From Sminthopsis crassicaudata (taxonomy: Eukaryota): DNA of 64,000 nucleotides. Positions 20,695 to 63,982 of the stretch are shown here, in pieces (position 1 is the first letter of the stretch; each line of letters starts with the position of its first letter). Below the pieces are notes generated by a model, which saw nothing but the letters and a program-made list of their open reading frames with translations, ran no database searches and had not been told where the DNA came from. The stretch covers positions 56,572,066 to 56,636,065 of the forward strand of contig NC_133623.1 of assembly GCF_048593235.1 (NCBI RefSeq), given 5' to 3'. A program made the translations under genes and the position numbers.

Positions 20695-23600
20695 AAAGTC
20701 AAAATCAAACTTTGAACCCACGAATGTACACAGAAGTAGGAAACACAGAACAGAGGTTTTCTCCTAACCAGCCCAGCGGCGCTCTTTTCGGAGAACGTTT
20801 CATAAGCCGAAGTAGATTCCAGTGGCCCTCCAAGACTGTAGGATCCTCCTCTCCATTCCTCGCCATATTGGTTAAGTTTTTTGGTTTGGGGAGGGCTTTT
20901 TTTCCTTTTTTCCGTTTTGGTTTTTCTCTGCAGTCATCGGCTGCCCACCTAATACGTACCAACTGGAGATCCAAACCCCAACCAACCCCAACAAGGGTCA
21001 AAACAGCTCAGAACACACAGCGATGTCCCGGCGCGTAGCTGGGGCGCGTCCCGAGGCACAAGGCGGGCATAGCGGGGCCATGGGCACACTCGCATAACAG
21101 AGTCGCCAGACACGTACACGGAGAGCCAGCTACACAGGCAGCAAGCCGCACCCCTCCACCGCACCCCACCGCAGCACACAAATGTTGAGGAGGCGCAAAC
21201 ACGGAGGAAGGAACACTTTCCACTTATACACCACTATTGGCCACTTTCTGATCTCTGCTGAGGACAGAACATCTGTGAGCCAGTTTTGTTTAATCAGAAA
21301 AATGACTTGAAAAGAAAAATAAATTGAAAAAAAAATTGTAGCGGATTTNNNNNNNNNNNNNNNNNNNNNNNNNNNNNNNNNNNNNNNNNNNNNNNNNNNN
21401 NNNNNNNNNNNNNNNNNNNNNNNNNNNNNNNNNNNNNNNNNNNNNNNNNNNNNNNNNNNNNNNNNNNNNNNNNNNNNNNNNNNNNNNNNNNNNNNNNNNN
21501 NNNNNNNNNNNNNNNNNNNNNNNNNNNNCCTTTTCCATCTTTGTAATGACTGACTGTTGGAATAAACCCAGTATGAAATGCAGCTGGCGGGACGGCAACA
21601 TTGTATGACTCCGGGAACGTTCACGCCTTGTCCATGATTGCTCATTTTAACGGATTCCTGCTTTTGTCAGCCTCCTCGGGGCTGGGGGGAGGGGGTGCCG
21701 GGACCTTGTGTTCTTAGCTTTTACTCCCTAGTGGCCACGTGAGGTGGATTCCGGGGACCATGCCCAAGGACCCGAGAAACGCAGACAGATTTGAGTGGGG
21801 TCGGGGGAGGCGAGGTAGGCCTTCCAGGGCGCCTCGGTTCCGTGCAGTTTGGACGTGTACGTTTTCTCCCGCACCTCTCCTACGGGCCCGTGGTTTCTTA
21901 GGTGACTGGAGGTCCATTAACCGTTTGGGATGAAGTTCCCTTTGTACCGTCCCTTAGCTTCCTGTAGTCTAGGATGGAGTTGGGGTTGGAGGTGTCTTGC
22001 AGAAGAAAGAGGGCAGAGACCCTCTCTTAAAATATAGGGTGTCTGGCCCTTTAGTAGGAAGAGGGACTGCATGACCCCCTCCCCTCCCTTCCCAAGGCTT
22101 CTCCAGCCTTTGGAAGAACCGAGTTTGTCTCTGTTATTAACAGACACTCAGGCTTCAGGCCTTTGCCCCTAGCCTCACGTGGCCTTAAGAGGAAGCTAGC
22201 TCCCAGCAGCCCCTGGGACAGCCGGCTCAGTATGGTTTGCCATACCTGGGGCTTGGAGAATTCTTACTACAGGTGCAGAGGCCCCTAGAGAGGGAAGGAA
22301 GTCTCCCCTTCCTCCAGGATGAGGCGCTGACATTTTTCTCTGTCCACAGGTGACCCCGGCAGCAATCCAAACAAGCGTCAGAGACAGCCTCCTCTCCTGG
22401 GAGATCATCCCGCAGAATATGGTGAGGGCAGGGGGTTCCCCTCCGTGGACTCCCGTGGCTCATGCGACCCTGCCCGCCGNNNNNNNNNNNNNNNNNNNNN
22501 NNNNNNNNNNNNNNNNNNNNNNNNNNNNNNNNNNNNNNNNNNNNNNNNNNNNNNNNNNNNNNNNNNNNNNNNNNNNNNNNNNNNNNNNNNNNNNNNNNNN
22601 NNNNNNNNNNNNNNNNNNNNNNNNNNNGGGGGCCATCGTCGGGGCCCAAGCCGATATGGCCCTCAGTATGGCCACCCCCCGCCCCCTCCCCCACCGCCTG
22701 AGTATGGCCCCCACGCAGACAGCCCTGTGCTGATGGTATATGGCCTTGACCAGTCCAAGATGAACTGTGACCGGGTCTTCAATGTCTTCTGTCTCTACGG
22801 CAATGTGGAGAAGGTGAGCCGGCAGGCCAGAACAAGCTTTGGGGTGCAAGGAAGCCCGGCCTCTGACCCTTGGCCTTTGGGCTGAGACCTTGGGCAGAAT
22901 TGCAATTCTCTGAAGTTGTCAGGGAGACCGACTCCTCGCGAACGAGTGGGGAGAAAGGACGGCCCTGGCCCATTGGGCGAAGCTTGCTGATGGGGGGGGG
23001 CCCTGCCTTTCTCTCTGAAGGTTAAATTCATGAAGAGCAAGCCAGGGGCGGCCATGGTGGAGATGGCGGACGGCTATGCAGTGGACAGAGCGATCACTCA
23101 CCTGAACAACAACTTCATGTTTGGACAGAAGCTGAACGTGTGGTAAGTACCTCCTTCCCCCAGCTCTGGCTCTGTTCCTTGGGGCTGGCCTGCGAGGGGT
23201 CAGAGGGGAAGGGGCAAAAGGAAGCCCGAGGAGGTCAACTCCCCGTGGCCTTGGCCTCCAAACAGCATTTTGGGGGACTGGATTTCTTACTGGGCATTTC
23301 ACCAAACTGCCAGGAAGAGAGTGGGAGGCCAGGGTAGCCAGGAAGGAGCCCGGGGCACAGAGTAACGGTCTTTTTGGTCTTCCCCATTACACACAGCGTT
23401 TCCAAGCAGCAGGCCATCATGCCCGGGCAGTCTTATGGGCTAGAGGACGGCTCGTGCAGCTACAAAGACTTCAGTGGCTCACGCAACAACCGTTTCTCGA
23501 CCCCGGAGCAGGCGGCCAAGAACAGAATCCAGCACCCCAGCAACGTGCTGCACTTCTTCAACGCGCCCTTGGAGGTGACCGAAGACAACTTCTTTGAGGT

Positions 23601-24552: not shown

Positions 24553-26189
24553 CATTGTGGTTATATGATCAGAGAGTGTTTCTTGGTCCTTCCATCTGCA
24601 GTCTGTTCTCCTCATGGGGACTACCTTGGCTCCCCAATGCTGGCGGGAAATGTCTAATAATTAATTTGTGTTTGTGTAACGGCTCGGGCTGAGCAGACAC
24701 GGGGTAAAGGACAGTTCCCAACCCTGAGTAGCTTCACTTGTGGAAAAAAAGACCAAGAAGCTAGTGGGCACTTGGAACACAGAGGTTTTAATTAGGGCCT
24801 AAAGGAAGCAAGAGAGGAGACAGGTTGTGGAAGAGCCTGCAGCAGGACAGGAAGTGAGGGGTAAGGAGGCTGGAAATGGGACAGGCCGCATCTTGTATTT
24901 CCTCTTGGGAGGCAATGGGGAGGTGCTGGTGGGGAGGGGGGAGAGGTAGGTAGGACCAACCAATCCTGTGCCTTAGGAAATCCTTAGGGGGCTGAATGAG
25001 GACGGAGTGGGGGAGAGGCCAGGCTGGCCCCCTGACCTACAGGGGGAGTGAGCCCCGGGAAGACAGGGTATTCAGGGATGATATCAGGCCTTTTACAACA
25101 GCCTAGATACTGGGCTGAGGGTGAGGAGGACCAGAGAGAGGAGAAGCCAGAGGGTCCGGGAGCAAGGGTGTTACCCTGGCCATACATGGGCAAGCATGGG
25201 GGGGGGGGGGCTAGGACATGCAGATTTTAAATAAAAGTATTGGACACTTGCTCTTTCTGAAGGGCAGCAGGGAGGCTGGGACAGGAAAGGTAGAGTTGGA
25301 AAGAGTTAAAGTCAGGGGAAGGAGAGAGGCGGCGGCCGGGGCCAGAGTCCGAGGAGGGCAGCCGAGGAGACGGGAGCACCATGGGGTCAAAGGCTGCCCT
25401 GGGGACGGTGAGAAGTGGATGTGGCCCCTGGTCACTGGGGAGAGCGGCCGGGCCAGAAGCTGGACTTTAAGAGAGGGAGGTGCTCCTTGCAGATGGCTTT
25501 TGATGGCAAAGCCATTAGTGAGCCAGGAGAGGAGACTGAAAATGAATGAGGTGCAGAGAGGTGGCCTGAGGTCATTAAACGGCACCCCCCCCAAACTAAA
25601 GAGCGGGTATGAGGACAGTCCTGGGGTGTTTGAAGGAGAGAAAAGTTGTCTGAGGTCGTGCTCTGGGAACGTCTGCACAGCCAGGAAGGCCCCGAACCTC
25701 AAAGGAAGAGAAGGGGAACCTGAGGTGCCCGAGGGGGTGAGGGCAGCTGGCACTGGAGGGCACAGGGACCGAGGATGAAGGGACAGCGGCTGCCGGGGCC
25801 GGCACTGCAGGCTTCCCAGCCCAAGGGGATGAGAAATGGTGGCCATCCCCACAGTGTAGTGACCACGACAAAGGAAGCTGGAGATCAGACCGGGCAGGAA
25901 GAGCCCAAGCTGCAGGCCGGGTCACCGGGCTCGGCCCAAGCCCTCCTTCCTCTCCTTCCTTTAGCTCCGTTTTCCCTTCCTTCCTTTTCCTTCCTCTTTT
26001 TCCCTTCCATCCCTCCTTTTCCCCCTCCCTTTCTCCCTCCTTCCCCGACTGATGCAGTACCTTGGGGTGGGGGTGGGGGTGGGGCTCCCTTCCCCAGGCC
26101 CCGCCCACTGGGTATAGTGGATCCCTTCCAAACTGGCTACATAATTTTTTTCGTCCGCTCTGACATTCTCCGCTTTACCGATGGGTAAA

Positions 26190-26600
26190 CTGAGGCTTGG
26201 CTAGGGGAGGAGGGCGCCCCCGTCAGGCCGCGCTTCGTTCTCTAGCCCTTGGCCTACCGGCGCCCGAGGCCGGACAAGGGGTGGGGTCAGGGAGAGGCCA
26301 CGCCCCTCCGCCCTCATTCATCATGGCGGCAGGACGCCTTCAGGGCGCGCTGACGGCTGGGGAAACAAGATGGCGCTCTGATCTTTCTCAATATGGTCGC
26401 TGCGCACTGCCCCCTACCCCGCTGCCGAGCGCTGCCCTCACTCAAGATGGCGGCAGTCTCCAAAATGGCCGCGGGCCCTGCCCTCTTTAATATGGTGCTG
26501 TCCCGCCCCCGCCACTCCACTTTGCTCAGGATGGCGGCGGCAATCTCTGGCTCTCGCGGGCTCCGGAGCCTCCTGCTGCGGCGTGAGTCCCCTAGTCCGG
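26190..26600 (+). promoter_or_regulatory. ECH1 CpG island promoter with YY1-type motifs
   Basis: CpG-rich. AAGATGGCG near 26367 and 26444, AAAATGGCCGC at 26462, further ATGGCGGC near 26323 and 26531. Confidence 0.7.
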
Positions 26601-29600
26601 GGGTCCGGGGTGGAGGTCATGACCTCGGGGCGGCAGGGGACAGGGTAGCTCTCTCCCTGGCTCTGACCTCTGACCCATTGTACCCCAGCCCCCCAAGTTC
26701 TGAACCCCCAGTGTGGGCTCACTCTCGCCGGTGTCTCAACTGATGACCTCGCTCTGACACGATCCCACCCGCGTCCTCTCCTCTCCTTCAGCCACGATCC
26801 CCCAGACGCCCCCGCCTCCACCCCCAAATGATCTTTCACTCCACTTACGCCCCCGTCAGGCGCCTCCTCCCTCCTTTCCCCAGAGAAAGCGGCCAGCCCA
26901 CCCGTCCCCCAGCCCCCGCCACCCGCCCCTCCCCCAGCCCGGCTCTTCCTGACCTTTCTCCCACTTTTGTGCTCTGGACCTCCAGGCCCCATGACCTCTC
27001 ACCCACAAAATGGATCTTCGCCCAGACCAAAAGGCCCCCCCTCCCCGCCAATCGCCCTCCCTTTCTCTCCCTGGAGCCCCCTCCTCTTTCAGTCCTCCTC
27101 TCCTAATCTTGGAGCCCCCTCCCCCTTCGGTCTCCCTCCTCTTTCCTAGTCTCTTTGGAGCCCCCTCCCACAGCTTTCCTTGTTCAGCTCCGCCCCGCCC
27201 CACTTGTTTTCCTGAAATTCAGGGTAACTGACTGGGGTCTCTCTTTGCTTCCCCCCACCCCCAAACCAAGAACTGGTGGCCGGCCACAAGCCCCGGCTGG
27301 GCCCGCGCTCCATGAGCTCCGCTGAGGAGCTGGCGGCCTCCCAGGCCAAGGAGCACGACTACGAGTCCCTGCGAGTGACCGAAGCGGGCGCCCACGTCCT
27401 GCACGTGCAGCTAAACAGGCCCGAGAAGAGGAATGCCATGAACAGGGCCTTCTGGAGGTCTGCGCGGGGGAGGGGCTGGGGGCTTGAGGGGGCGGGGCCG
27501 GGGAGGGGAGTGGCCTCCTGGGCGATGGTTCTCCAGCCTGTAGCGGCGGAAGCCCCCGAGGCCCGCAGGGCCCGGCCCAGGGGGCTAGGGGGGGCGAGCT
27601 GGGGATACTAGGAGTGAGGGCCAGCCCAAGGAGTGCCATGGGGTGGGGGCGGGGAGGAGACTTTGGAGGATGGGTACGAATTGGGGCTGCCACTAAGAGG
27701 AGAGATCACAGGGCAACAGTTTGGGACAGCCCGAGCACAGAGAAGTGGGATAGCCCGAGCTCAGAGAGGTGGGATAGCCCGAGCACAGAGAGGTGGGATA
27801 GCCCGAGCACGGGGAGGTGGGACAGCCCGAGCTCAGAGAGGTGGGATAGCCCGAGCTCGGGGAGGTGGGATAGCCCGAGCTCGGGGAGGTGGGATAGCCC
27901 AAGCACAGAGAGGTGGGATAGCCCGAGCACGGGGAGGTGGGATAGCCCGAGCACGGGGAGGTGGGACAGCCCGAGCTCAGAGAGGTGGGATAGCCCGAGC
28001 TCGGGGAGGTGGGATAGCCCGAGCTCGGGGAGGTGGGATAGCCCGAGCACAGAGAAGTGGGATAGCCCGAGCACGGGAGGTGGGACAGCCCGAGCACGGG
28101 GAGGTGGGATAGCCCGAGCACGGGGAGGTGGGACAGCCCGAGCACGGGGAGGTGGGACAGCCCGAGCACGGGGAGGTGGGACAGCCCGAGCTCAGAGAGG
28201 TGGGACAGCCCGAGCACGGGGAGGTGGGACAGCCCGAGCACGGAGCACGGGGAGGTGGGACAGCCCGAGCACTGGGAGGTGGGACAGCCCGAGCACAGAG
28301 AGGTGGGATAGCCCGAGCACGGGGAGGTGGGACAGCCCGAGCTCAGGGAGGTGGGACAGCCCGAGCACGGGGAGGTGGGACAGCCCGAGCTCAGAGAGGT
28401 GGGACAGCCCGAGCACGGGGAGGTGGGACAGCCCGAGCTCAGAGAGGTGGGATAGCCCGAGCTCAGAGAGGTGGGATAGCCCGAGCACGGGGAGGTGGGA
28501 TAGCCCGAGCACGGGGAGGTGGGACAGCCCGAGCTCAGGGAGGTGGGACAGCCCGAGCACTGGGAGGTGGGATAGCCCGAGCTCGGGGAGGTGGGACAGC
28601 CCGAGCTCAGGGAGGTGGGACAGCCCGAGCTCGGGGAGGTGGGACAGCCCGAGCACGAGCACGGGGAGGTGGGACAGCCCGAGCACGAGCACGGGGAGGT
28701 GGGACAGCCCGAGCTCGGGGAGGTGGGACAGCCCGAGCACGGGGAGGTGGGACAGCCCGAGCACTGGGAGGTGGGACAGCCCGAGCACTGGGAGGTGGGA
28801 CAGCCCGAGCTCAGAGAGGTGGGACAGCCCGAGCTCAGAGAGGTGGGATAGCCCGAGCTCGGAGAGGTGGGATAGCCCGAGCACGGGGAGGTGGGACAGC
28901 CCGAGCACGGGGAGGTGGGACAGCCCGAGCTCGGGGAGGTGGGACAGCCCGAGCTCGGGGAGGTGGGACAGCCCGAGCACGGGGAGGTGGGACAGCCCGA
29001 GCACGGGGAGGTGGGACAGCCCGAGCTCGGGGAGGTGGGACAGCCCGAGCACTGGGAGGTGGGACAGCCAAAGCACAGAGAGGTGGGATAGCCCGAGCAC
29101 AGGGAGGTGGGACAGCCCGAGCTCAGGGAGGTGGGACAGCCCGAGCACGGGGAGGTGGGACAGCCCGAGCACGGGGAGGTGGGACAGCCCGAGCTCAGAG
29201 AGGTGGGATAGCCCGAGCTCAGAGAGGTGGGACAGCCCGAGCTCAGAGAGGTGGGACAGCCCGAGCTCAGAGAGGTGGGACAGCCCGAGCACGGGGAGGT
29301 GGGACAGCCCGAGCACGGGGAGGTGGGACAGCCCGAGCACGGGGAGGTGGGACAGCCCGAGCTCGGGGAGGTGGGACAGCCCGAGCACGGGGAGGTGGGA
29401 CAGCCCGAGCTCAGAGAGGTGGGATAGCCCGAGCTCAGAGAGGTGGGATAGCCCGAGCTCAGAGAGGTGGGACAGCCCGAGCTCAGAGAGGTGGGACAGC
29501 CCGAGCACGGGGAGGTGGGACAGCCCGAGCACGGGGAGGTGGGACAGCCCGAGCACTGGGAGGTGGGACAGCCCGAGCACGGGGAGGTGGGACAGCCCGA

Positions 29601-32600
29601 GCTCAGAGAGGTGGGACAGCCCGAGCACGGGGAGGTGGGACAGCCCGAGCTCAGAGAGGTGGGATAGCCCGAGCTCAGAGAGGTGGGATAGCCCGAGCAC
29701 GGGGAGGTGGGATAGCCCGAGCACGGGGAGGTGGGACAGCCCGAGCTCGGGGAGGTGGGACAGCCCGAGCACTGGGAGGTGGGATAGCCCGAGCTCGGGG
29801 AGGTGGGACAGCCCAAGCTCAGGGAGGTGGGACAGCCCGAGCTCGGGGAGGTGGGACAGCCCGAGCTCGGGGAGGTGGGACAGCCTGAGCTCGGGGAGGT
29901 GGGACAGCCCGAGCACGAGCACGGGGAGGTGGGACAGCCCGAGCACGGGGAGGTGGGACAGCCCGAGCACGGGGAGGTGGGACAGCCCGAGCACTGGGAG
30001 GTGGGACAGCCCGAGCACTGGGAGGTGGGACAGCCCGAGCTCAGAGAGGTGGGACAGCCCGAGCACGGGGAGGTGGGACAGCCCGAGCTCAGAGAGGTGG
30101 GATAGCCCGAGCACGGGGAGGTGGGATAGCCCGAGCACGGGGAGGTGGGACAGCCCGAGCTCGGGGAGGTGGGACAGCCCGAGCACTGGGAGGTGGGATA
30201 GCCCGAGCTCGGGGAGGTGGGACAGCCCAAGCTCAGGGAGGTGGGACAGCCCGAGCTCGGGGAGGTGGGACAGCCCGAGCTCGGGGAGGTGGGACAGCCT
30301 GAGCTCGGGGAGGTGGGACAGCCCGAGCACGAGCACGGGGAGGTGGGACAGCCCGAGCACGGGGAGGTGGGACAGCCCGAGCACGGGGAGGTGGGACAGC
30401 CCGAGCACTGGGAGGTGGGACAGCCCGAGCACTGGGAGGTGGGACAGCCCGAGCTCAGAGAGGTGGGACAGCCCGAGCTCAGAGAGGTGGGATAGCCCGA
30501 GCTCGGAGAGGTGGGATAGCCCGAGCTCGGAGAGGTGGGATAGCCCGAGCACGGGGAGGTGGGATAGCCCGAGCACGGGGAGGTGGGACAGCCCGAGCTC
30601 GGGGAGGTGGGACAGCCCGAGCTCGGGGAGGTGGGACAGCCCGAGCTCGGGGAGGTGGGACAGCCCGAGCACTGGGAGGTGGGACAGCCAAAGCACAGAG
30701 AGGTGGGACAGCCCGAGCACGGGGAGGTGGGACAGCCCGAGCTCAGAGAGGTGGGACAGCCCGAGCACGGGGAGGTGGGACAGCCCGAGCACGGGGAGGT
30801 GGGACAGCCCGAGCTCAGAGAGGTGGGATAGCCCGAGCTCAGAGAGGTGGGATAGCCCGAGCTCAGAGAGGTGGGACAGCCCGAGCTCAGAGAGGTGGGA
30901 CAGCCCGAGCACGGGGAGGTGGGATAGTCCGAGCTCGGGGAGGTGGGACAGCCCGAGCACGGGGAGGTGGGACAGCCCGAGCTCGGGGAGGTGGGACAGC
31001 CCGAGCTCAGAGAGGTGGGATAGCCCGAGCTCAGAGAGGTGGGACAGCCCGAGCACGGGGAGGTGGGACAGCCCGAGCTCGGGGAGGTGGGACAGCCCGA
31101 GCTCAGAGAGGTGGGATAGCCCGAGCTCAGAGAGGTGGGACAGCCCGAGCACGGGGAGGTGGGATAGTCCGAGCTCGGGGAGGTGGGACAGCCCGAGCAC
31201 GGGGAGGTGGGACAGCCCGAGCACTGGGAGGTGGGACAGCCCGAGCTCAGAGAGGTGGGACAGCCCGAGCTCAGAGAGGTGGGATAGCCCGAGCTCGGAG
31301 AGGTGGGATAGCCCGAGCACGGGGAGGTGGGATAGCCCGAGCACGGGGAGGTGGGACAGCCCGAGCTCGGGGAGGTGGGACAGCCCGAGCTCGGGGAGGT
31401 GGGACAGCCCGAGCACGGGGAGGTGGGACAGCCCGAGCACGGGGAGGTGGGACAGCCCGAGCTCGGGGAGGTGGGACAGCCCGAGCACTGGGAGGTGGGA
31501 CAGCCAAAGCACAGAGAGGTGGGATAGCCCGAGCACAGGGAGGTGGGACAGCCCGAGCTCAGGGAGGTGGGACAGCCCGAGCACGGGGAGGTGGGACAGC
31601 CCGAGCACGGGGAGGTGGGACAGCCCGAGCTCAGAGAGGTGGGATAGCCCGAGCTCAGAGAGGTGGGACAGCCCGAGCTCAGAGAGGTGGGACAGCCCGA
31701 GCTCAGAGAGGTGGGACAGCCCGAGCACGGGGAGGTGGGACAGCCCGAGCACGGGGAGGTGGGACAGCCCGAGCACGGGGAGGTGGGACAGCCCGAGCTC
31801 GGGGAGGTGGGACAGCCCGAGCACGGGGAGGTGGGACAGCCCGAGCTCAGGGAGGTGGGATAGCCCGAGCTCAGAGAGGTGGGATAGCCCGAGCTCAGAG
31901 AGGTGGGACAGCCCGAGCTCAGAGAGGTGGGACAGCCCGAGCACGGGGAGGTGGGACAGCCCGAGCACGGGGAGGTGGGACAGCCCGAGCACTGGGAGGT
32001 GGGACAGCCCGAGCACAGAGAGGTGGGATAGCCCGAGCACGGGGAGGTGGGACAGCCCGAGCTCAGGGAGGTGGGACAGCCCGAGCACGGGGAGGTGGGA
32101 CAGCCCGAGCTCAGAGAGGTGGGACAGCCGGAGCACGGGGAGGTGGGACAGCCCGAGCTCAGAGAGGTGGGATAGCCCGAGCTCAGAGAGGTGGGATAGC
32201 CCGAGCACGGGGAGGTGGGATAGCCCGAGCACGGGGAGGTGGGACAGCCCGAGCTCGGGGAGGTGGGACAGCCCGAGCACTGGGAGGTGGGATAGCCCGA
32301 GCTCGGGGAGGTGGGACAGCCCAAGCTCAGGGAGGTGGGACAGCCCGAGCTCGGGGAGGTGGGACAGCCCGAGCTCGGGGAGGTGGGACAGCCTGAGCTC
32401 GGGGAGGTGGGACAGCCCGAGCACGAGCACGGGGAGGTGGGACAGCCCGAGCACGGGGAGGTGGGACAGCCCGAGCACGGGGAGGTGGGACAGCCCGAGC
32501 ACTGGGAGGTGGGACAGCCCGAGCACTGGGAGGTGGGACAGCCCGAGCTCAGAGAGGTGGGACAGCCCGAGCTCAGAGAGGTGGGATAGCCCGAGCTCGG

Positions 32601-35600
32601 AGAGGTGGGATAGCCCGAGCTCGGAGAGGTGGGATAGCCCGAGCACGGGGAGGTGGGATAGCCCGAGCACGGGGAGGTGGGACAGCCCGAGCTCGGGGAG
32701 GTGGGACAGCCCGAGCTCGGGGAGGTGGGACAGCCCGAGCTCGGGGAGGTGGGACAGCCCGAGCACTGGGAGGTGGGACAGCCAAAGCACAGAGAGGTGG
32801 GATAGCCCGAGCACGGGGAGGTGGGACAGCCCGAGCTCAGAGAGGTGGGACAGCCCGAGCACGGGGAGGTGGGACAGCCCGAGCACGGGGAGGTGGGACA
32901 GCCCGAGCTCAGAGAGGTGGGATAGCCCGAGCTCAGAGAGGTGGGATAGCCCGAGCTCAGAGAGGTGGGACAGCCCGAGCTCAGAGAGGTGGGACAGCCC
33001 GAGCACGGGGAGGTGGGATAGTCCGAGCTCGGGGAGGTGGGACAGCCCGAGCACGGGGAGGTGGGACAGCCCGAGCTCGGGGAGGTGGGACAGCCCGAGC
33101 TCAGAGAGGTGGGACAGCCCGAGCTCGGAGAGGTGGGACAGCCCGAGCTCGGGGAGGTGGGACAGCCCGAGCTCAGAGAGGTGGGATAGCCCGAGCTCAG
33201 AGAGGTGGGATAGTCCGAGCTCGGGGAGGTGGGACAGCCCGAGCACGGGGAGGTGGGACAGCCCGAGCTCGGGGAGGTGGGACAGCCCGAGCTCGGGGAG
33301 GTGGGACAGCCCGAGCTCAGGGAGGTGGGACAGCCCGAGCTCAGAGAGGTGGGACAGCCCGAGCACGGGGAGGTGGGATAGTCAGAGCTCGGGGAGGTGG
33401 GACAGCCCGAGCACTGGGAGGTGGGACAGCCCGAGCACTGGGAGGTGGGACAGCCCGAGCACAGAGAGGTGGGACAGCCCGAGCACTGGGAGGTGGGACA
33501 GCCCGAGCACAGAGAGGTGGGACAGCCCGAGCACAGAGAGGTGGGATAGCCTGAGCACAGAGAGGTGGGACAGCCCGAGCACTGGGAGGTGGGACAGCCC
33601 GAGCACTGGGAGGTGGGACAGCCCGAGCACAGAGAGGTGGGACAGCCCGATCACGGGGAGGTGGGACAGCCCGAGCACAGAGAGGTGGGATAGCCCGAGC
33701 ACAGAGAGGTGGGACAGCCCGAGCACTGGGAGGTGGGACAGCCCGAGCACAGGGAGGTGGGATAGCCCGAGCTCAGAGAGGTGGGACAGCCCGAGCTCAG
33801 AGAGGTGGGACAGCCCGAGCACGGGGAGGTGGGATAGTCCGAGCTCGGGGAGGTGGGACAGCCCGAGCACTGGGAGGTGGGACAGCCCGAGCACAGAGAG
33901 GTGGGACAGCCCGAGCACTGGGAGGTGGGACAGCCCGAGCACAGAGAGGTGGGATAGCCTGAGCACAGAGAGGTGGGACAGCCCGAGCACTGGGAGGTGG
34001 GACAGCCCGAGCACAGAGAGGTGGGACAGCCCGATCACGGGGAGGTGGGACAGCCCGAGCACTGGGAGGTGGGACAGCCCGAGCACAGAGAGGTGGGATA
34101 GCCCGAGCACAGAGAGGTGGGACAGCCCGAGCACTGGGAGGTGGGACAGCCCGAGCACAGAGAGGTGGGATAGCCCGAGCACGGGGAGGTGGGACAGCCC
34201 GAGCACGGGGAGGTGGGACAGCCCGAGCTCGGGGAGGTGGGATAGCCCGAGCACGGGGAGGTGGGACAGCCCGAGCACGGGGAGGTGGGACAGCCCGAGC
34301 TCGGGGAGGTGGGACAGCCCGAGCACTGGGAGGTGGGACAGCCCGAGCACAGAGAGGTGGGACAGCCCGAGCTCAGAGAGGTGGGACAGCCCGAGCACGG
34401 GGAGGTGGGATAGTCCGAGCTCTGGGAGGTGGGACAGCCCGAGCACTGGGAGGTGGGACAGCCCGAGCACAGAGAGGTGGGACAGCCCGAGCACAGAGAG
34501 GTGGGACAGCCCGAGCACGGGGAGGTGGGACAGCCCGAGCACGGGGAGGTGGGACAGCCCGAGCACGGGGAGGTGGGACAGCCCGAGCTCGGGGAGGTGG
34601 GACAGCCCGAGCTCAGAGAGGTGGGATAGCCCGAGCACAGAGAGGTGGGACAGCCCGAGCACGGGGAGGTGGGATAGCCCGAGCACGGGGAGGTGGGACA
34701 GCCCGAGCACAGAGAGGTGGGATAGCCCGAGCACAGAGAGGTGGGATAGCCCGAGCACGGGGAGGTGGGACAGCCCGAGCACGGGGAGGTGGGACAGCCC
34801 GAGCTCGGGGAGGTGGGACAGCCCGAGCACAGAGAGGTGGGACAGCCCGAGCTCAGAGAGGTGGGATAGTCCGAGCTCAGAGAGGTGGGACAGCCCGAGC
34901 TCAGAGAGGTGGGATAGTCCGAGCACGGGGAGGTGGGACAGCCCGAGCACTGGGAGGTGGGATAGCCCGAGCACGGGGAGGTGGGACAGCCCGAGCTCAG
35001 AGAGGTGGGATAGCCGGAGCACGGGGAGGTGGGATAGCCCGAGCACGGGGAGGTGGGATAGTCCGAGCTCGGGGAGGTGGGATAGTCCGAGCACGGGGAG
35101 GTGGGACAGCCCGAGCACGGGGAGGTGGGATAGCCCGAGCACGGGGAGGTGGGATAGCCCGAGCTCGGGGAGGTGGGATAGTCCGAGCACGGGGAGGTGG
35201 GACAGCCCGAGCACGGGGAGGTGGGATAGTCCGAGCACGGGGAGGTGGGACAGCCCGAGCACGGGGAGGTGGGACAGCCCGAGCACGGGGAGGTGGGATA
35301 GCCCGAGCACGGGGAGGTGGGACAGCCCGAGCACGGGGAGGTGGGACAGCCCAGGCTTGAAGGGAGTTAGAGGATAGCCCAGGGAAAGAAGGGGAATGGG
35401 GGCGAGGCTCCCGTCCTGACCCGGCGCCCTTTTCTCAGGGAGATGGTGGAGTGTTTCAACAAGATCGGCCAGGACCCGCGCTGCAGGGCTGTGGTGATCT
35501 CGGGGGCCGGGAAGATGTTCTCGGCAGGTGCCTGCCGGGCCCCCTCCCCTTCCTCAGGCTGAGCCCCCTCTCCCACCTGCGGCAAGGAGCAGACACCTGT

Positions 35601-37830
35601 GGGCGGGCCTTTTCCGTAGCGGGAGACGGAGGCCCCAGGAGTCGAACCCCGGTCCTGTTCACAGGAGCCCCGCCCGGCCGGCAGCAGTGGAGCACCGGGT
35701 TTGGGGCCACGAGGCTGTAGTTGGGCTGGAGGGGACCCCACAAGGTGCCAGGGAGTGGCTTATGCTAGGGGGTCCCCGCTTTGCGCCATGAGGGGCTCCC
35801 CGTGTCACAGATAGCGGCCCAGATGGAGATGGGACTGGAGGGGGGTGTCGGGGGTAGAGGGGGGGACCCCAGCTCATCTCCGCCGCAGGGATCGACCTCA
35901 TGGACATGGCGGGAGACCTTCTCCAGCCCCGAGGGGATGATCCCGCCCGCGTCAGCTGGAACTTGCGCCAGCTCATCTCCAGATACCAGGAGACCTTCAC
36001 TGTCATCGAGAAGGTGGGGCTGCCCGCGGGGGGGGGGGGTGGGGGGGGGGCTGGGGGAGGGGCCTGGGCAGCTCCTAGAGCCCCTTTTCCTCGCAGTGCC
36101 CCAAGCCGGTCATCGCCGCGGTCCACGGTGGTTGCATCGGGGGAGGTGAGTCTGGGAGGCCCGGAGCTGGGGGCCGGGCCCTGTGCCCGCGGGCGGCCCA
36201 CTCACCTCCCGCCTGCACCCTGCAGGGGTGGACCTCATCTCGGCCTGTGACATCAGGTACTGCGCCCAGGACGCCTGGTTCCAGGTGAAGGTGAGAGCAG
36301 AGGCTCGGCAGGGCGGGGCTCCGGGGCGAGGGCAGCCCTGACCCTCCTGTCACCCGCAGGAGGTGGACATCGGGCTGGCTGCCGACGTGGGGACGCTGCA
36401 GCGCCTGCCCAGGATCCTAGGGAGCCAGAGGTGCCAAGCGCCAGGGGCTGGGGGCGGGGGGGGGGGGGCGGCCGGGCCAGGGTCTCCTCACCGCTCCGCC
36501 TCCCCTCCCCAGTCTGGTGAATGAGCTGGCCTTCACTGCCCGGAAGATGATGGCCGACGAAGCCCTGAGCAGCGGCCTGGTCAAGTAAGGCCCCTCCCCC
36601 GGGCTCCCCAGGCCCGGCCCTGACCCTGGGGGGATCCCGAGGCTCCTCCCCCTCCTTCCCTGGGCTCCCCAAACCATCCCCGAGGCCCCTCCCCCTCCTC
36701 GCCCGGGCTCCCCAGGCCCGGCCCCGGGGCTCCGCCTCCCTCCGGGCGCTGACCCGGGGCCTGTCCGCCGGCCCCCAGCCGCGTGTTTCAGGACCACGAG
36801 TCCCTGCTGGCCGCGGCCTTGGGTCTGGCGGGCGAGATCTCCAGCAAGAGCCCGGTGGCGGTGCAGGGCACCAAAATCAACCTGCTCTACTCGCGGGACC
36901 ACAGCGTGGCCGAAGGGCTCAACTTCATGGTGAGCCCGCCCTGCGGCCCCCTGCTGGGTGCTCCGCCCCTGCCTTGGGGAGGGAGACCCCAAGCAAACAG
37001 ACTCATGGGATGAAAGGAAATCCCCCGGGGGAGGGGGAGAGAGGGAGGGAGGAGCTTCGAGGAGGCAAGGAGGGCGGAAAATGGGAGCGGGCGCTCATCT
37101 CCTGGCCAGTACTGGGGAGAGCCCTTGGACTGCAGCCCATAAGCTGGTGGGGGCCGAGCTCAGCCTCAGCTGGAGGAGTGTGGGGGTGGGTGGGGCCAGA
37201 GGCTGCGGGGGGGGCGGGTTCGAGGTGGTCGTCCGGCCAGGTCGGACCCTCTGGGACCCTTTTCCTGGAGGGCCAGATCCCGGCGGGGCTCGTCCTTTCC
37301 TTCTCCAGCTTGTTTTACAGATGGGGAAGCTGAGGCTGTGCCAGCCAGGGCCCCCAATCAGGCCCATCTGAGGCCCGGCTGAGCTCAGGTTGGGCTCCCA
37401 GCACCCCCAGGGGTTGTTCAGGAGCGTCTCAGGGGCCCGGGATGGCAGTAAGGCTCAGGGAGGAAGGGCCAGGAGGAGCCTCTGCAGCCAGGCTCCTTCA
37501 TCTGGCTTTGGGTGGTCTCTGCAGGGGCATTGCCCAGGGAAAAATCTACCCCCAGTCGCATCCCAGCTGGGCACCCTGGGCAGGCCACTTCTCCCTGTCT
37601 GCCTCAGTTTCCTCATCTGTCAAATGAGCTGGAGAGGGAAATGGCAAGCTCCCCAGGAAACCCCAGATGGGTCCCAGAGCCAGCCACAAGTGAATGACCA
37701 GTGCCCCCCCTTTCTCTCTCCTTAGACTGCCTGGAACATGAGCATGCTGCAGACCGAGGACATAACCAAGTCCGTCCAGGCCTCCTTGGAGAAGAAGGAC
37801 CTGAAGAGCGTCACCTTCTCCAAACTCTGA
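26531..37830 (+). CDS. ECH1: Delta(3,5)-delta(2,4)-dienoyl-CoA isomerase (enoyl-CoA hydratase 1), 10 exons, 321 aa
   Basis: Exons 26531-26582, 27271-27457, 35439-35527, 35889-36013, 36097-36145, 36226-36290, 36360-36430, 36513-36584, 36779-36929, 37726-37830 join in frame (966 nt). It has an Arg/Leu-rich N-terminal MTS-like sequence, HVQLNRPEKRNAMN, CDIRYC and KEVDIGLAADVGTLQRL (acidic catalytic motifs), and C-terminal PTS1 SKL*. Confidence 0.97.
27722..35352 (+). repeat. Giant 24-bp minisatellite (~7.6 kb, ~318 units), consensus GAGCACGGGGAGGTGGGACAGCCC, in ECH1 intron 2
   Basis: Continuous tandem array. Variable positions gagc[a/t]c[g/a/t]g[g/a]gaggtggga[c/t]ag[c/t]cc, with occasional 6-bp GAGCAC insertions. 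Confidence 0.99.
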
Positions 37831-38504: not shown

Positions 38505-41500
38505 ATGGCCTTTATGCCTGCTCCCGGCTACCAACCCAGCTATAACCCGGTGAGTGACCAGCCAGCGGACCCAGCCCCGAGCCCGGAGCCCCCAGCTCTG
38601 CTCTTCCCCAAATCTGATCTCCCATCCCCACGATGACCTTGGGTGGTGAGGAGAGCAAGCCGGGGACCACAGAGCCTCCCTCCCTCCCTCTCGTTGAGGG
38701 GACTTCATTCTGGACCTCTAACCCCCCCATCCTCTCCCCCACCCAGACTCTCCCGTACAACAGAGAGATCCCCGGGGGCCTTCGCTCAGGGATGTCCATC
38801 TACATCCAAGGGGTGGCCAGTGACCACATGAAGAGGTGAGGGCTGAAAAGGGATGGAGGAGAGGATGGGAGAATGGCTGGGGTCTCTGGACAGAGGAGGG
38901 TGGGAAAAATGCTGGCTCTGGCCCCTCACATATCCTGTGTGACCTGGAAGTCACTCACCTTCTCAGAGATCTCAATTACAATCTGAAATGAGGCTAAAAA
39001 ATAGTGGGAAGGAGAAAACCTGCATCTATTAATTGCCTACTGTGTGCCATGCACTATATTACAAATGTCTCATCTTAGACTTCTATCTTAGCTGGTCTCT
39101 AAGGTCAAAACGGCCTCTCATCTGGTGGTCCTGGCACAGGGGAGGGAGGATTAGAAGTGAGCGCCCACGGCCCCGCCCAGCCCCACCGTCAGATCTTCCT
39201 GGAGGAGGGAGTCGGTGGGGAGCCGGGAGGCTCGAAGGCCCGGGCTGCGGGGCCTGGGCTGCGGGGCCCTGATCTTCTTTTCGTCCCGTGGCTTCTCCCT
39301 GCCAGGTTTTATGTAAACTTTGTGTTGGGGGGCACGCCCGGCTGCGACGTGGCCTTCCACTTCAACCCGCGCTTCGACGGCTGGGACAAGGTGGTTTTCA
39401 ACACGATGCAGGGAGGCCGCTGGGGCAGCGAGGAGAGGAAGCGAAGCATGCCCTTCAAAAAGGGAGCCCCCTTTGAGATGGTCATCATGGTCATGGACGA
39501 GCATTACAAGGTCTGGGAGAGGCCCGGGCGTGGGGCGGGGCGGGGCGGGGTCCTTCCGAGGCGCTGCCCCTTAGAGCGATTTAGGAGAAACTTCCCAGAA
39601 GCGGGCAAGAGGACAGCGGCCGTGGGGCCCCAGGGCCAGCCCGAGGTTCAGGCCATCAAGAAGCACTTATTAGGCGCCTATGGTGGTGGGTTTCAGAAAA
39701 GGCGATTTAGTCTAATCTCAAAGATTTCTAGAAAAAAAAGCCACGGAGGTAGTGAGATCCCTGGCCCCGTGGGACTTCAAAATCTATTGGCTTGGCTGCC
39801 TCAGGTGAAAAAACTGGACAAAAAGTGTGTGAGGTCCGGGGCCGAGACAGACCTCGATCATGGAGTGCTCCCAGTCCTCTCTCCTGGGTACCTCCTCAGC
39901 TCTCCCCGGCTGCCAAAGTCCTCCCCGCGGGACGCGGCCGGGCGGATGCATCAAATAACGAATGCATGGACGCATTTATTAGCTTGGGAAGGAAGAGATC
40001 TGGGCCCAAATATTGCTCTGCGGTTGGCACCAAGTGCCCATTCCCGTTACCGGGACTCAGTTTCTTCCGCTGTCTTATAAGGGGCTTTCAATTCAACCTG
40101 GCCTCCAAGCTCTGAGCTTCCCGAAGGCTGCGCCCCCTCTGCTTGTACCTCCTCTCTCCTATGGCAGCGTATTTTCCTATTGTTCATCAGGAGCCGGGAA
40201 ATTGGGACAGTAGGACATTCCTAGATTTGGGATTCGCCCATGTAGAGCAGGGCAGCCAGGTGGCGCTATCGAGCCGGTCCTAGAATCCCGAGGGCCTGAA
40301 TTCAAATGCAGTCTTAGCTGCGTGATCCTGAGCCAGTCACTGACCCCCGTTCTCCCTGTTGGAGAAGGAAATGGCAAACTCTCTGCCGAGAAATTCCAGA
40401 TGGGGCCACCGAGAACCAGCAGGGCTCAGCGACAATCCCTCTACCAGAACGGGCACTTAGCAAGCTCTCCCGTGGTCAGTCGATGAGCATTTATTAAGTG
40501 CCCACTGTGTACCTGGAACTGTCCTGGTGGTCCTGGGGATGCAAATATAGACAAAAGATGATCCTTGACATCAGGGGGTTCACAGATAAACAGGGAAACG
40601 AGCTGCAGACTCATAAACTGGGAGTGGCGGGCAGGGAAAGCTTTAGCCCTGAGGGATCGGCAAAGACATCGTGATTTTTATTAAATTCATATGACATAAA
40701 ACCCCTGTGAGCACATGATTATCCAGATCTGGGGATTTACCTTTACCAAGGCAACCTAGAGGGTTGGAGCTCCTCTTGGGATGCACTTTGACCTGAAGTG
40801 TTAGCTAGTAGTTATTAGAGGCAGGATTTGAACCCTGGATCCAACCGGATGTTCTGAGAGGTCCCAGGAAGGGGAATGGTTAACGATGGGGGTGGGGGTG
40901 GGAAAGACTTGCTGGTTTTGGACTTGAGTCCTCCTAACTTCCTCCCTCCCCATCAGGTGGTGGTAAATGGCAGCCCCTTCTATGAGTATGGACACCGGGT
41001 ACCTATACAGATGGTCACTCATTTGCAAGTGGATGGAGACCTGGAGCTTCACTCCATCAACTTCCTTGGAGGAGGCCCTGACCCAGGCCAGGTAGAGAGT
41101 CTGGAGAGGGATGGGCCCACTGAGGCAGGGCTCGCCCGGGAGAGCAGGGCTGGGGACACGTTCCACTCTGTCCTGCTGGGGTGCTGCAGAAAGTTCGGGG
41201 GCCGCAGGGGCCCTAAGCGGGGAGCTCAGCACGGGAGGAGGAAACTCCGAAACGCTTCCTGGGAAGACGGGTGGGTAGCTGGACCACTGGCTCTTCTCCA
41301 ACTCCCGCCATCGGCCTCCCCCCTTCCCCAGTTTTAGAGAGGAGGGGAAATAGCTGGCCTAAGGTCATATGGCTAAAGAGCAAGCAAAAGAAATAGAATT
41401 CATCAACTCATATATAATTCATATAAGATCATTCTTAATTCATAAGCTATAATTCAAGCCCAGGCAGGCTCTCTACAGATGCAGCTCATGAAATTACGCC

Positions 41501-51449: not shown

Positions 51450-52974
51450 ATGGCCAGCTACGTGAGTGTGTGCCCTGGGGACGGACGGATGGATGGAAGG
51501 GGGGAACATGTGGCTCCCAGCTCTGCCCCCCTCGAGCTCTCCTCTCCCACCCCTTCTCCTTGGCTCTGTCTCCCCCCCCTCCCGTCGCAGGGCGCCCCTC
51601 CCTGAGCTTCGGGCTCACCTCCCATTGCCTGTGCCCCGCAGACCCTCCCTCACAAGGCCGCGCTCCAAGATGGGCTCAAGCCTGGCTCCGTGATCCGAGT
51701 CAGGGGCACCCTGCCGCCCGACGCTAACCGGTGAGTCTGGGGTGTGGAGGGCGGGGCCAAGAGGTGCTGGGGCCTGGGCCATTCACCCCGAGATCATTCC
51801 TGGGGGCGGTTTCGGGGTCCCCTGGGGGGCGAGTGTGTCTGGGGGACTTGGGGCTCCAGCTCCCCTCCTCCCCCCCAGAACTTCCACCTCCGGCCTCTGA
51901 CTCCAGAAGGTTTGGCAGCCGCGAGGTTTGGGCCCAGCGACCCCCTGGCCACCTCCCGCCCGGCCCAGGGGACCCCAGGCTGGACGCCATTCCGTGGCCA
52001 GCCCCGCCTCCGCTTGGGTTTGGGAATCTCGGGTCTGCCCCAGCCCCCCTCCCCCCCCCCCGCCCGCAGCCCCATGGAGGCCCCCAGGCCTCAGCCCACC
52101 CTCCCTGGGAGTCCCACCCAGAGCCTGCCCCATCCCGGTAAGAAGCCCCACCCCCACCCCCGTCCCTGATCCCCTAAAGCCCCCCCCCCGTGGGTGCTGA
52201 CGCCCCCTGCTCTGCCGCAGCTTCCACGTGAACTTGCTGTGCTCGGAGGGCGCGGGGGCGGACGCCGCCCTGCACTGCAACCCCCGCCTGGACTCGGGGG
52301 AGATGGTGTTTAACTCCTTCCAGAACGGCACCTGGGGCCGGGAGGAGCGCAGCCCCAGCCTTCCCTTCCAGAAAGGGCAGCCCTTCGACCTGCTGCTCAT
52401 CACCGCGGACGACGGCTTCAAGGTACCCGCGGGCCTCGGCTCCGGGCGGCCGGGGGGGGGGGGGGCGCTGCTGGGACCGCTGGCCAGCGCCGTCCGGGGG
52501 CAGGGCCGGGGGGGGGTGGGGGTGGGCTGCTGGGACCGCTGGCCAGCGCCGTCCGGGGACGGGGGGGGGCGGGGGCGCTGCTGGGACCGCTGGCCAGCGC
52601 CGTCCGGGGGCAGGGCCGGGGGGGGGCGGGGCGCTGCTGGGACCGCTGGCCAGCGCCGTCCGGGGGCAGGGCCGGGGGCGGCGCCCGGGGCGTCGGCAGG
52701 GACGCGGCCTCCCACGGAGGCTGGGGGATCGAAGGCCCGGGCGGCGGGTCCGGGCGTGCGAGGGGCGCAGGCGTGTCTCCCGCCCCCGGACTGGCCCAGG
52801 CCTCGGGGCTCGGAGCTCGGGTGCGGGAGGCCCGGCTGAGCCGCGCTGCCCCTTCCGCAGGCCGTGGCCGGAGACAGCGTGTTCCACCACTTCCCGCACC
52901 GCGTGCCCCTGCCCCTGGTCCGGCTCCTGGAGGTCGGCGGCGACGTGCAGCTGCAGAGCGTGTCCGTCCTGTGA
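51450..52974 (+). CDS. LGALS7: Galectin-7 (prototype single CRD), 4 exons, 138 aa
   Basis: Exons 51450-51461, 51642-51730, 52221-52422, 52861-52974 (417 nt): MASY-TLPHKAALQDGLKPGSVIRVRG...-FHVNLLCSEGAGADAALHCNPRLD...VFN...WGREER...-AVAGDSVFHHFPHRVPL...EVGGDVQLQSVSVL*. Position next to LGALS4 fits synteny. Confidence 0.93.
52462..52680 (+). repeat. 4-copy GC-rich tandem repeat (~50-60 bp; core GCTGCTGGGACCGCTGGCCAGCGCCGTCCGGGG) in LGALS7 intron 3
   Basis: Core identical in four copies separated by variable G runs. Confidence 0.9.
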
Positions 52975-63685: not shown

Positions 63686-63982
63686 NNNNNNNNNNNNNNN
63701 NNNNNNNNNNNNNNNNNNNNNNNNNNNNNNNNNNNNNNNNNNNNNNNNNNNNNNNNNNNNNNNNNNNNNNNNNNNNNNNNNNNNNNNNNNNNNNNNNNNN
63801 NNNNNNNNNNNNNNNNNNNNNNNNNNNNNNNNNNNNNNNNNNNNNNNNNNNNNNNNNNNNNNNNNNNNNNNNNNNNNNNNNNNNNNNNNNNNNNNNNNNN
63901 NNNNNNNNNNNNNNNNNNNNNNNNNNNNNNNNNNNNNNNNNNNNNNNNNNNNNNNNNNNNNNNNNNNNNNNNNNNNNNNNNN
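63686..63982. other. N gap, 297 nt
   Basis: Run of N. Confidence 0.99.

Follow-up and report, generated by a model that had tools for sequence, protein, structure and literature searches.

Several described repeats bear comparison with the tandem array found in intron 2 of the ECH1 gene of the dunnart Sminthopsis crassicaudata. Jeffreys-type minisatellites, which have the core GGAGGTGGGCAGGARG (PMC9069542), resemble it as kilobase-sized, head-to-tail arrays of a GC-rich, purine-skewed unit (24 bp here) with interspersed variants and with ends that are older than the interior. When this core was compared with the dunnart unit junction, GGAGGTGGG plus an extra A and CAG, the first 9 bases matched exactly and 13 of 16 matched with one gap, although in sequence this G-rich the similarity could be compositional. 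Unlike the 'transient' primate loci of Jeffreys type, the dunnart site is far older, with the same period and position in Dromiciops, bilby and dasyurids. Intronic VNTRs with a 25-bp unit are documented in intron 18 of ABCA7, where alleles range from 315 bp to 9.7 kb (PMC5954066), and an earlier note on this DNA therefore overstated the case in calling an intronic array of such size unusual. The ABCA7 and dunnart arrays have near-equal unit sizes and array size ranges, and both are GC-rich, intronic, close to an exon and supplied with a GT donor-like motif in each unit. The ABCA7 array, however, starts at and copies the exon's own donor, while that of the dunnart begins inside the intron, 264 nt from its start, and carries GAG/GTGGGA against a real donor of GAG/GTCTGC; the ABCA7 unit is described as C-rich on the reference strand and the dunnart unit is G-rich on the sense strand.

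Immunoglobulin class-switch regions and other R-loop- or G-loop-forming repeats (PMC3630100) are likewise multi-kilobase, intronic, G-rich on the non-template strand, situated downstream of a promoter and rich in AGCT, of which the dunnart array has 137. The dunnart array differs in lying within ECH1, between an HNRNPL-like gene and LGALS4, rather than upstream of an immunoglobulin constant gene, and in having no internal G-cluster initiation zones and a low G-quadruplex (G4) potential. The ATRX-bound VNTR near alpha-globin (PMC3630100, PMC9203812) is also G-rich, CpG-containing and near expressed genes, and its length can matter for the expression of a neighbour, but it is a strong G4 motif, which the dunnart array is not. 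Effects on splicing and expression have been shown for the ABCA7 VNTR. A literature search combining ECH1 with minisatellite or VNTR turned up no relevant report.

The window analysed is a stretch of 64,000 nucleotides, and the array length, copy number and block duplication reported below are all taken from one dunnart assembly (GCA_048593235.1); the dunnart locus retrieved from it has the same sequence as positions 28505-53783 of the window. The gene was called with ECH_1/ECH_2 and spans approximately 26465-37830 (+ strand), with the HNRNPL-like gene and the galectin-4 gene (LGALS4) as neighbours. Exon 8 (36783-36929) matched the dienoyl-CoA isomerase structures 8sk6, 2vre and 1dci at an E value of 1e-16, and exon 2 gave 87-88% protein identity with dasyurid exon 2. 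Exons were treated individually rather than as a joined spliced model. The features surrounding the array are as follows.

27271 to 27457, + strand: ECH1 exon 2; its 3' boundary, 27457, is secure (donor GAG/GTCTGC), and the acceptor is placed near 27270/27271 from a pyrimidine tract and AG.
27458 to 35438, + strand: ECH1 intron 2, 7981 nt, between the exon 2 end at 27457 and the exon 3 start at 35439.
27458 to 27721, + strand: left non-repeat part of intron 2, rich in G clusters and ending in the anchor GGAGAGATCACAGGGCAAC, which is common to other marsupials.
27722 to 35352, + strand: 24-bp minisatellite of 317 units with consensus TGGGACAGCCCGAGCACGGGGAGG; the G-rich strand is the ECH1 sense strand.
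35353 to 35438, + strand: right non-repeat part of intron 2, with a decayed extra unit (35370-35393), a likely branch site (cctgac), a pyrimidine tract and the acceptor AG.
35439 to 35527, + strand: ECH1 exon 3, 89 nt, beginning 86 nt downstream of the array.
39157 to 40077: LGALS4 open reading frame.

Tandem Repeats Finder reported the array at 27722-35352 (+ strand) with a period of 24, 316.5 copies, 91% matches and 0% indels. When the array was split at each anchor TGGGA[CT]AG, 317 head-to-tail units over 7631 bp were obtained: 309 of 24 nt, five of 30 nt, one of 31 nt, one of 23 nt and a terminal stub of 11 nt. At up to 3 mismatches the consensus had 285 matches, compared with 0 in 100 shuffles, and at up to 4 mismatches it had 315, every one on the + strand and within the array. 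The array makes up roughly 67% of the span of the gene and 95.6% of intron 2, of which it leaves 264 nt on the left and 86 nt on the right. This bears out, with a correction to the intron coordinates, the 24-bp G-rich minisatellite that the earlier note had placed in this intron. The strand asymmetry and the one to two CpGs per unit described there were also recovered: GC skew is +0.33 and AT skew +0.48, the sense strand is 46% G overall (44-47% throughout) and 68% purine, and the 480 CpGs correspond to 1.51 per unit. Against island thresholds of GC at least 0.5 and CpG observed/expected at least 0.6 across more than 200 bp, the array has a GC content of 0.70 and an observed/expected ratio of 0.574 (0.51-0.62 in 1-kb windows), with 0.58 in the promoter region. 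A ratio of 0.57, at the level of the promoter island, might point not to youth but to hypomethylation in the germline, as is characteristic of functional islands.

Neither a polyadenylation signal nor an acceptor-like pyrimidine tract was found in the array. The donor-like motif GAG/GTGGGA occurs 314 times, always at least 86 nt upstream of exon 3. An origin of the array from the exon's own splice donor was considered and rejected, as the real donor, GAG/GTCTGC, differs from the unit motif and the seed units of outgroups already sit at the same internal position of the intron. A coding reading was also rejected: an open reading frame of 2587 codons runs through the array because the unit equals eight codons, but it lies wholly in an annotated intron of the 349-aa ECH1 model, and the other frames contain stops. 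For annotation the array is a large, non-coding intronic repeat.

Internally the array is divided into four parts.

27722 to 28771, + strand: 5' domain, units 1-43; 63% of the first 20 units have the ancestral GATAG.
28772 to 31135, + strand: first super-block copy, units 44-141, including a 17-unit tandem duplication (29684-30097 and 30098-30511).
31208 to 33229, + strand: second super-block copy, units 145-228, matching the first in every unit apart from 5 unit substitutions and 3 unit-indels.
33230 to 35352, + strand: 3' domain, units 229-317, with a different variant mix and more CACTGGG and CACAGAG units; 58% of the last 20 units have GATAG.

The super-blocks share exact duplicates of 606 bp (30098-30703 and 32192-32797) and 480 bp (28916-29395 and 31352-31831); they form a recent, near-identical internal duplication of 2.0-2.4 kb. 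The ends are more ancestral than the interior, with the GATAG state at 58-63% compared with 22-26%. Variant units are shuffled within the array: 33 unit types are interspersed, 17 of the 24 positions are invariant, variation is concentrated at positions 6, 16, 18 and 20, and the main variable sites associate almost freely. Neighbouring units are identical at a frequency of 0.19, against an expected 0.106.

The orthologous site was compared at seven other loci, from two devil assemblies, antechinus, bilby, opossum, brushtail possum and Dromiciops; a look-up of koala LGALS4 returned no record. At the same intron 2 anchor the 24-bp repeat is present in 44 copies in Dromiciops and 4.5 copies in bilby, while the Tasmanian devil and antechinus, the closest relatives examined, have 2-3 decayed copies. 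The opossum has one copy of the unit and the brushtail possum has 0, since there the anchor directly abuts the right flank. Intron 2 measures 317 nt in antechinus, 361 in both devil assemblies, 592 in bilby, 695 in opossum, 715 in brushtail possum and 1852 in Dromiciops; at 7981 nt the dunnart intron is 22 to 25 times as long as in the other two dasyurids. The range of 0 to 317 copies at one orthologous position supports instability of the site on an evolutionary scale and therefore points to an old, unstable minisatellite site that was hugely expanded in the dunnart lineage. Dromiciops, bilby and the dasyurids diverged roughly 55-70 million years ago. A stretch that appears MIR-like follows the array site in Dromiciops and brushtail possum, and an origin of the repeat from a MIR-type element was considered but not adopted. 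That a repeat site should last over tens of millions of years might alternatively reflect weak constraint.

At the position of the dunnart CCCGAG, bilby, Dromiciops and copy 1 of the devil read CCCAAG, and this dunnart CpG is therefore a gain that was subsequently amplified. The proposal in the earlier note that variants reflect CpG-transition decay consequently holds for some rare variants, which are CpG transitions, but not for the CCCGAG CpG.

The array is an intronic GC-rich VNTR, and so belongs to a known class. The reading that we prefer, with a probability of about 0.8, is that it represents a dunnart-lineage hyper-expansion, to approximately 317 units and 7.6 kb, of an old 24-bp repeat of the non-coding minisatellite (VNTR) type, without a selected function. 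The repeat would already have been at this site of ECH1 intron 2 in the common ancestor of Dromiciops and the Australian marsupials, if not earlier, and would grow and shrink by replication slippage and by unequal exchange or gene conversion among units. The self-complementary 12-mer of the unit (CCCGAGCTCGGG) would aid slippage and exchange, because it allows single strands to fold on themselves whatever the register. Weak-to-strong changes (T>C, A>G) spreading through the interior would have raised the GC content and given about 1.5 CpGs per unit. The array is presumably transcribed with ECH1 and removed along with the intron, and any effects would be by-products: an intron lengthened 22 to 25 times relative to the other two dasyurids, a long purine-rich non-template tract that should extend R-loops begun among the G clusters of the left flank, a group of 480 CpGs beside the promoter island and the possible influence of 314 donor-like motifs at least 86 nt before exon 3.

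A wrong assembled length for an otherwise real array is unlikely; the size could be too great or too small, for instance if the 2.0-2.4 kb block (units 44-141 and 145-228) had been falsely duplicated in tandem. Two near-identical blocks with exact duplicates of 606 and 480 bp are a pattern that an assembler can create or collapse, and the dunnart array is known from one assembly; however, with 5 unit substitutions and 3 unit-indels between them, the blocks are not a simple copy. In addition, 97.5% of the units have a length of precisely 24 nt, and the few of 30 nt reappear at equivalent positions in the two blocks, which favours high base accuracy and a real structure. The runs of N in the window (21349-21528, 22480-22627 and 63686-63982) all lie away from the array, with none inside or adjoining it, and 7.6 kb can be spanned by ordinary long reads. 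Less probable still is a G4-forming minisatellite of the CEB1 type, with instability and effects arising from G4 DNA or RNA, for which the expected signature is four tracts of at least three G with short loops, or a G4Hunter score of at least 1.2-1.5. Each unit can carry GGGG, GG and GGG runs on one strand and 90 four-tract motifs appear if loops of up to 15 nt are allowed, but the canonical (G3+N1-7)x4 motif is absent from the array, as are motifs with loops extended to N1-12, and about one third of the units (the CAGAG variants) lack the GGGG run. The G4Hunter mean of the array is 0.63 and its maximum 1.32, with values of at least 1.2 at 0.7% of positions and of at least 1.5 at none; scores are higher in the rest of the window. 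ViennaRNA with the G4 option always preferred hairpins, dominated by inter-unit pairing, and no minimum-energy fold contained a G4, as the G runs are taken up in pairing with the C run of each unit. The G4 formation suggested by the earlier note is thus poorly supported.

Its suggestion of R-loops is more plausible as a prediction. In the QmRLFS-type model a G-cluster initiation zone must have, no more than 50 nt after it, a stretch whose non-template strand is at least 40% G; our own regex version found three initiation zones in the 264-nt left flank (27466-27508, 27568-27604 and 27640-27654), none inside the array, and the array itself follows at 44-47% G and 68% purine on the sense strand for 7.6 kb. 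This arrangement is among the points that speak for the array as a functional co-transcriptional element: a switch-region-like R-loop tract, an unmethylated extension of the CpG island tuning ECH1 or LGALS4, or a length-dependent modulator of exon 3 inclusion in the manner of the ABCA7 VNTR. The CpG observed/expected ratio equals that of the promoter, and the array ends 86 nt before an 89-nt exon whose skipping would shift the ECH1 frame. Elsewhere, the length of the ABCA7 VNTR is associated with reduced expression and with skipping of the exon that follows (PMC5954066), and that of a G-rich VNTR modifies alpha-globin expression if ATRX is lacking (PMC3630100). Against this, ECH1 is annotated as intact in all species compared, at every copy number from 0 to 317, and the closest relatives examined carry only the 2-3 decayed copies, so a functional role appears improbable. 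The array looks like an ordinary self-expanding repeat rather than a functional element.

As such, the array changes nothing in the known workings of repeats of this type. For dunnart studies it is likely to be a length-polymorphic marker, and short-read mapping, methylation calls and expression studies of ECH1 or LGALS4 may be misled at this position. There is some chance, though a rather small one, that ECH1 intron 2 is among the longest-lived minisatellite sites yet described, now of switch-region size in a constitutively transcribed gene of the laboratory-bred dunnart. The locus provides a clear, dated series in which a single orthologous site holds 0, 1, 2-3, 4.5, 44 or 317 copies, showing that a minisatellite seed can survive over tens of millions of years before it expands in a single lineage, with a rise in CpGs and GC. 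If the array is polymorphic in length, and if R-loops form or exon 3 inclusion shifts, it would offer a tractable natural system for learning how a housekeeping gene copes with an 8-kb intron that is R-loop-prone, hairpin-prone and dense in CpGs.

The minisatellite in ECH1 intron 2 was recovered by Tandem Repeats Finder as a single array at 27722-35352, with a period of 24, 316.5 copies, 91% matches and no indels. Cutting the array at a fixed anchor gave 317 units, 309 of them exactly 24 nt long, with five of 30 nt, one of 31 nt, one of 23 nt and an 11-nt terminal stub. The unit consensus, TGGGACAGCCCGAGCACGGGGAGG, was matched with up to three mismatches 285 times, compared to 0 in 100 shuffles, and with up to four mismatches 315 times, every one on the + strand and within the array. 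Composition is flat from end to end (GC 0.70, GC skew +0.33, AT skew about +0.48, 44-47% G, 68% purine), and the 480 CpGs (1.51 per unit) correspond to an observed/expected ratio of 0.574. The length of the array is known from one dunnart assembly; the S. crassicaudata galectin-4 locus (GCA_048593235.1) is identical to window 28505-53783.

ECH1 is on the + strand of the window, and its exons were treated one by one. The end of exon 2 and the start of exon 3 define intron 2 as follows.

Features of ECH1 that enclose the array
27457, + strand: 3' end of exon 2, coding ...AFWR, donor GAG|GTCTGC
27458-35438, + strand: intron 2, 7981 nt
35439, + strand: start of exon 3, preceded by a pyrimidine tract and CAG

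The array takes up 95.6% of the intron, with 264 nt remaining to its left and 86 nt to its right. The gene spans about 26465-37830, in agreement with the proposal of the earlier note that the repeat makes up about two-thirds of ECH1. A later exon (36783-36929) matched the dienoyl-CoA isomerase structures 8sk6, 2vre and 1dci with an E of 1e-16, and the public gene call at the locus carries the families ECH_1 and ECH_2 in a product of 349 aa. The sense strand of the promoter, exon 1 and intron 1 (window 26000-27499) is C-rich, with a GC skew of -0.1 to -0.33, and the skew changes from negative to positive (+0.33) exactly at the start of intron 2. G10-11 blocks with a 12-13 bp period, in about 3 copies, were seen in an ECH1 intron at 36028-36068, and the Tasmanian devil ECH1 region has a 28-nt poly-G farther downstream (L001:8607-8634). 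A public canid model named galectin-4-like (P0081, 508 aa, Canis lupus baileyi) contains ECH_1 and galectin domains together and represents a read-through or fusion of ECH1 and LGALS4.

The ECH1-LGALS4 regions of other marsupials were retrieved via the neighbouring gene LGALS4, and the number of repeat copies in intron 2 was compared.

Length of ECH1 intron 2 and copies of the 24-bp repeat in marsupials
Dunnart: 7981 nt, 317 copies
Dromiciops: 1852 nt, 44 copies (1057 bp)
Bilby: 592 nt, 4.5 copies
Tasmanian devil (two assemblies): 361 nt, 2-3 decayed copies
Antechinus: 317 nt, 2-3 decayed copies
Opossum: 695 nt, 1 copy
Brushtail possum: 715 nt, 0 copies

The left edge of the repeat site is a conserved anchor in all species compared, with the dunnart form GGAGAGATCACAGGGCAAC. 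In Dromiciops the 44 copies (L007:4405-5461, GCA_019393635.1; GC skew +0.45) follow this anchor, and their unit, for example TGGGATAGCCCAAGCAGAGGAAGG, is plainly the same as that of the dunnart; the bilby copies are also of this unit. The dasyurid introns align with both flanks of the dunnart intron, and the last decayed devil and antechinus copy survives in the dunnart as the right flank of the array, at 35370-35393. The brushtail possum is scored as 0 copies because its anchor joins directly to the sequence found 3' of the array in Dromiciops. Because the same repeat recurs at the orthologous position across marsupials, the site is old: the last common ancestor of Dromiciops and the Australian marsupials, if not an earlier one, already had it. 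In the other lineages the number of copies has drifted between 0 and 44, and the rise to 317 copies took place on the dunnart branch, once it had separated from the lineage of devil and antechinus. At every copy number compared ECH1 carries an intact annotation, and this is what weighs most against a selected function of the array. Between the repeat site and exon 3, Dromiciops (L007:5600-5660) and the brushtail possum (equivalent part of L008) have a stretch that resembles the core of a MIR-type element and is missing in the dasyurid introns.

Within the dunnart array 17 of the 24 unit positions never vary, and nearly all variation falls at positions 6 (C/T), 16 (A/T), 18 (G/A/T) and 20 (G/A). 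Variants at these main sites associate almost freely, the pattern that sequence exchange between units would produce. The outgroup state GATAG accounts for 58-63% of the first and last 20 units compared to 22-26% of the interior; old edges around a homogenised core are what such arrays usually show. This core consists of two super-block copies of about 85-100 units each, at 28772-31135 and 31208-33229, which are equal unit for unit except for five unit substitutions and three unit-indels and share exact duplicates of 606 bp and 480 bp; the first copy also contains a local 17-unit duplication. The duplication reflects a recent unequal exchange or, with lower probability, a mistake in the assembly. 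Real structure is favoured by the near-perfect register of 24 nt and by the rare 30-nt units, which reappear at corresponding positions.

The earlier note had read the cacg>caca and cccg>ccca variants as CpG decay, an account that holds only in part. The dunnart CCCGAG corresponds to CCCAAG in bilby, Dromiciops and devil copy 1, and the arrays of Dromiciops and bilby contain one CpG (in 1057 bp) and none, respectively. Since the outgroups read CCCAAG, the dunnart unit gained the CpG at positions 11-12, with amplification afterwards. The derived states that are common replace a weak base by a strong one (T>C at position 6, A>G at position 12), which would fit GC-biased conversion. CACGG is already present in copy 2 of devil and antechinus, so positions 18 and 20 are not polarisable. 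Several of the rare variants are indeed CpG transitions: C>T at position 11, and G>A at 12 and at 18. By a rough count they are more frequent than the four CpG positions would lead one to expect, and some methylation-driven decay is plausible. The first CpG is retained in 95% of units and the array observed/expected ratio of 0.57 is that of the promoter region; such retention may reflect either youth or low germline methylation.

Of the structures proposed for the G-rich strand, G-quadruplexes have low predicted potential. The array contains no motif of four G tracts joined by loops of at most 12 nt, about a third of units are without a GGGG run, and G4Hunter gave a mean of 0.63 and a maximum of 1.32, with 0.7% of array positions at ≥1.2, less than in the rest of the window, and none at ≥1.5. 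ViennaRNA folds with quadruplexes allowed never used one; the predicted folds pair units through CCCGAGCWCGGG, a 12-mer that is a perfect palindrome in 44 units, and fold-back in any register through this sequence would be a plausible driver of slippage. The predicted R-loop potential has better support: in a scan with our own regex version of the QmRLFS model, the 264-nt left flank held three G-cluster initiation zones and the array itself had none. The 40% G elongation threshold was reached over the whole array on the non-template strand.

The unit junctions read GAG|GTGGGA in 314 copies and, by a rough position-weight table, score approximately 4 bits above GAG|GTCTGC, the real donor. The exon 2 donor (window 27455-27463) is weak by consensus, as are its orthologs in the other Australidelphian species compared, GTCTGG in devil, antechinus, bilby and brushtail possum and GTGTGG in Dromiciops; the opossum donor is GTTGGC. 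The first 50 nt of intron 2 are packed with G runs. The array contains no acceptor-like pyrimidine tract and no polyadenylation signal, and read-through from exon 2 ends at 27609, ahead of the array. A splice-donor minisatellite of the ABCA7 kind was considered and rejected because the array starts away from the exon donor. In ABCA7, a 25-bp intronic VNTR (0.3-9.7 kb) is associated with reduced expression and with skipping of the exon that follows (PMC5954066), and by analogy an effect of array length on the 89-nt exon 3 is conceivable.

Other tandem repeats were seen nearby. A different, C-rich 54-bp minisatellite lies in a later ECH1 intron of the devil (L001:7769-8329 and L006:8038-8472). 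Its copies number 10.5 in one devil assembly and about 7-8, less regular, in the second, which reflects either polymorphism or a difference in assembly. The bilby has a G-rich array of 39 15-bp copies upstream of ECH1 (L003:3896-4492) and a C-rich 47/54-bp array just upstream of exon 2 (L003:5414-5851). In several marsupials, ECH1 and the sequence around it are prone to repeats. In the dunnart window, a G-rich tandem repeat with a period of 51-56 bp and about 4 copies (also read as 110 bp x 2) lies downstream of LGALS4 at 52444-52681, and Tandem Repeats Finder reported a GTGAGT-containing 26-30 bp repeat of about 13 copies, a RINL VNTR, at 2890-3261.

A literature search returned no paper tying ECH1 to a minisatellite. 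GC-rich minisatellites have the core GGAGGTGGGCAGGARG (PMC9069542), the first nine bases of which are matched by the dunnart unit junction, and G-rich repeats that give R-loops or G-loops when transcribed are also a known kind (PMC3630100). Large intronic VNTRs are likewise well known, and the array belongs to the intronic GC-rich class. It is real and very large, yet an ordinary kind of element, one whose deep history is unusually well resolved.
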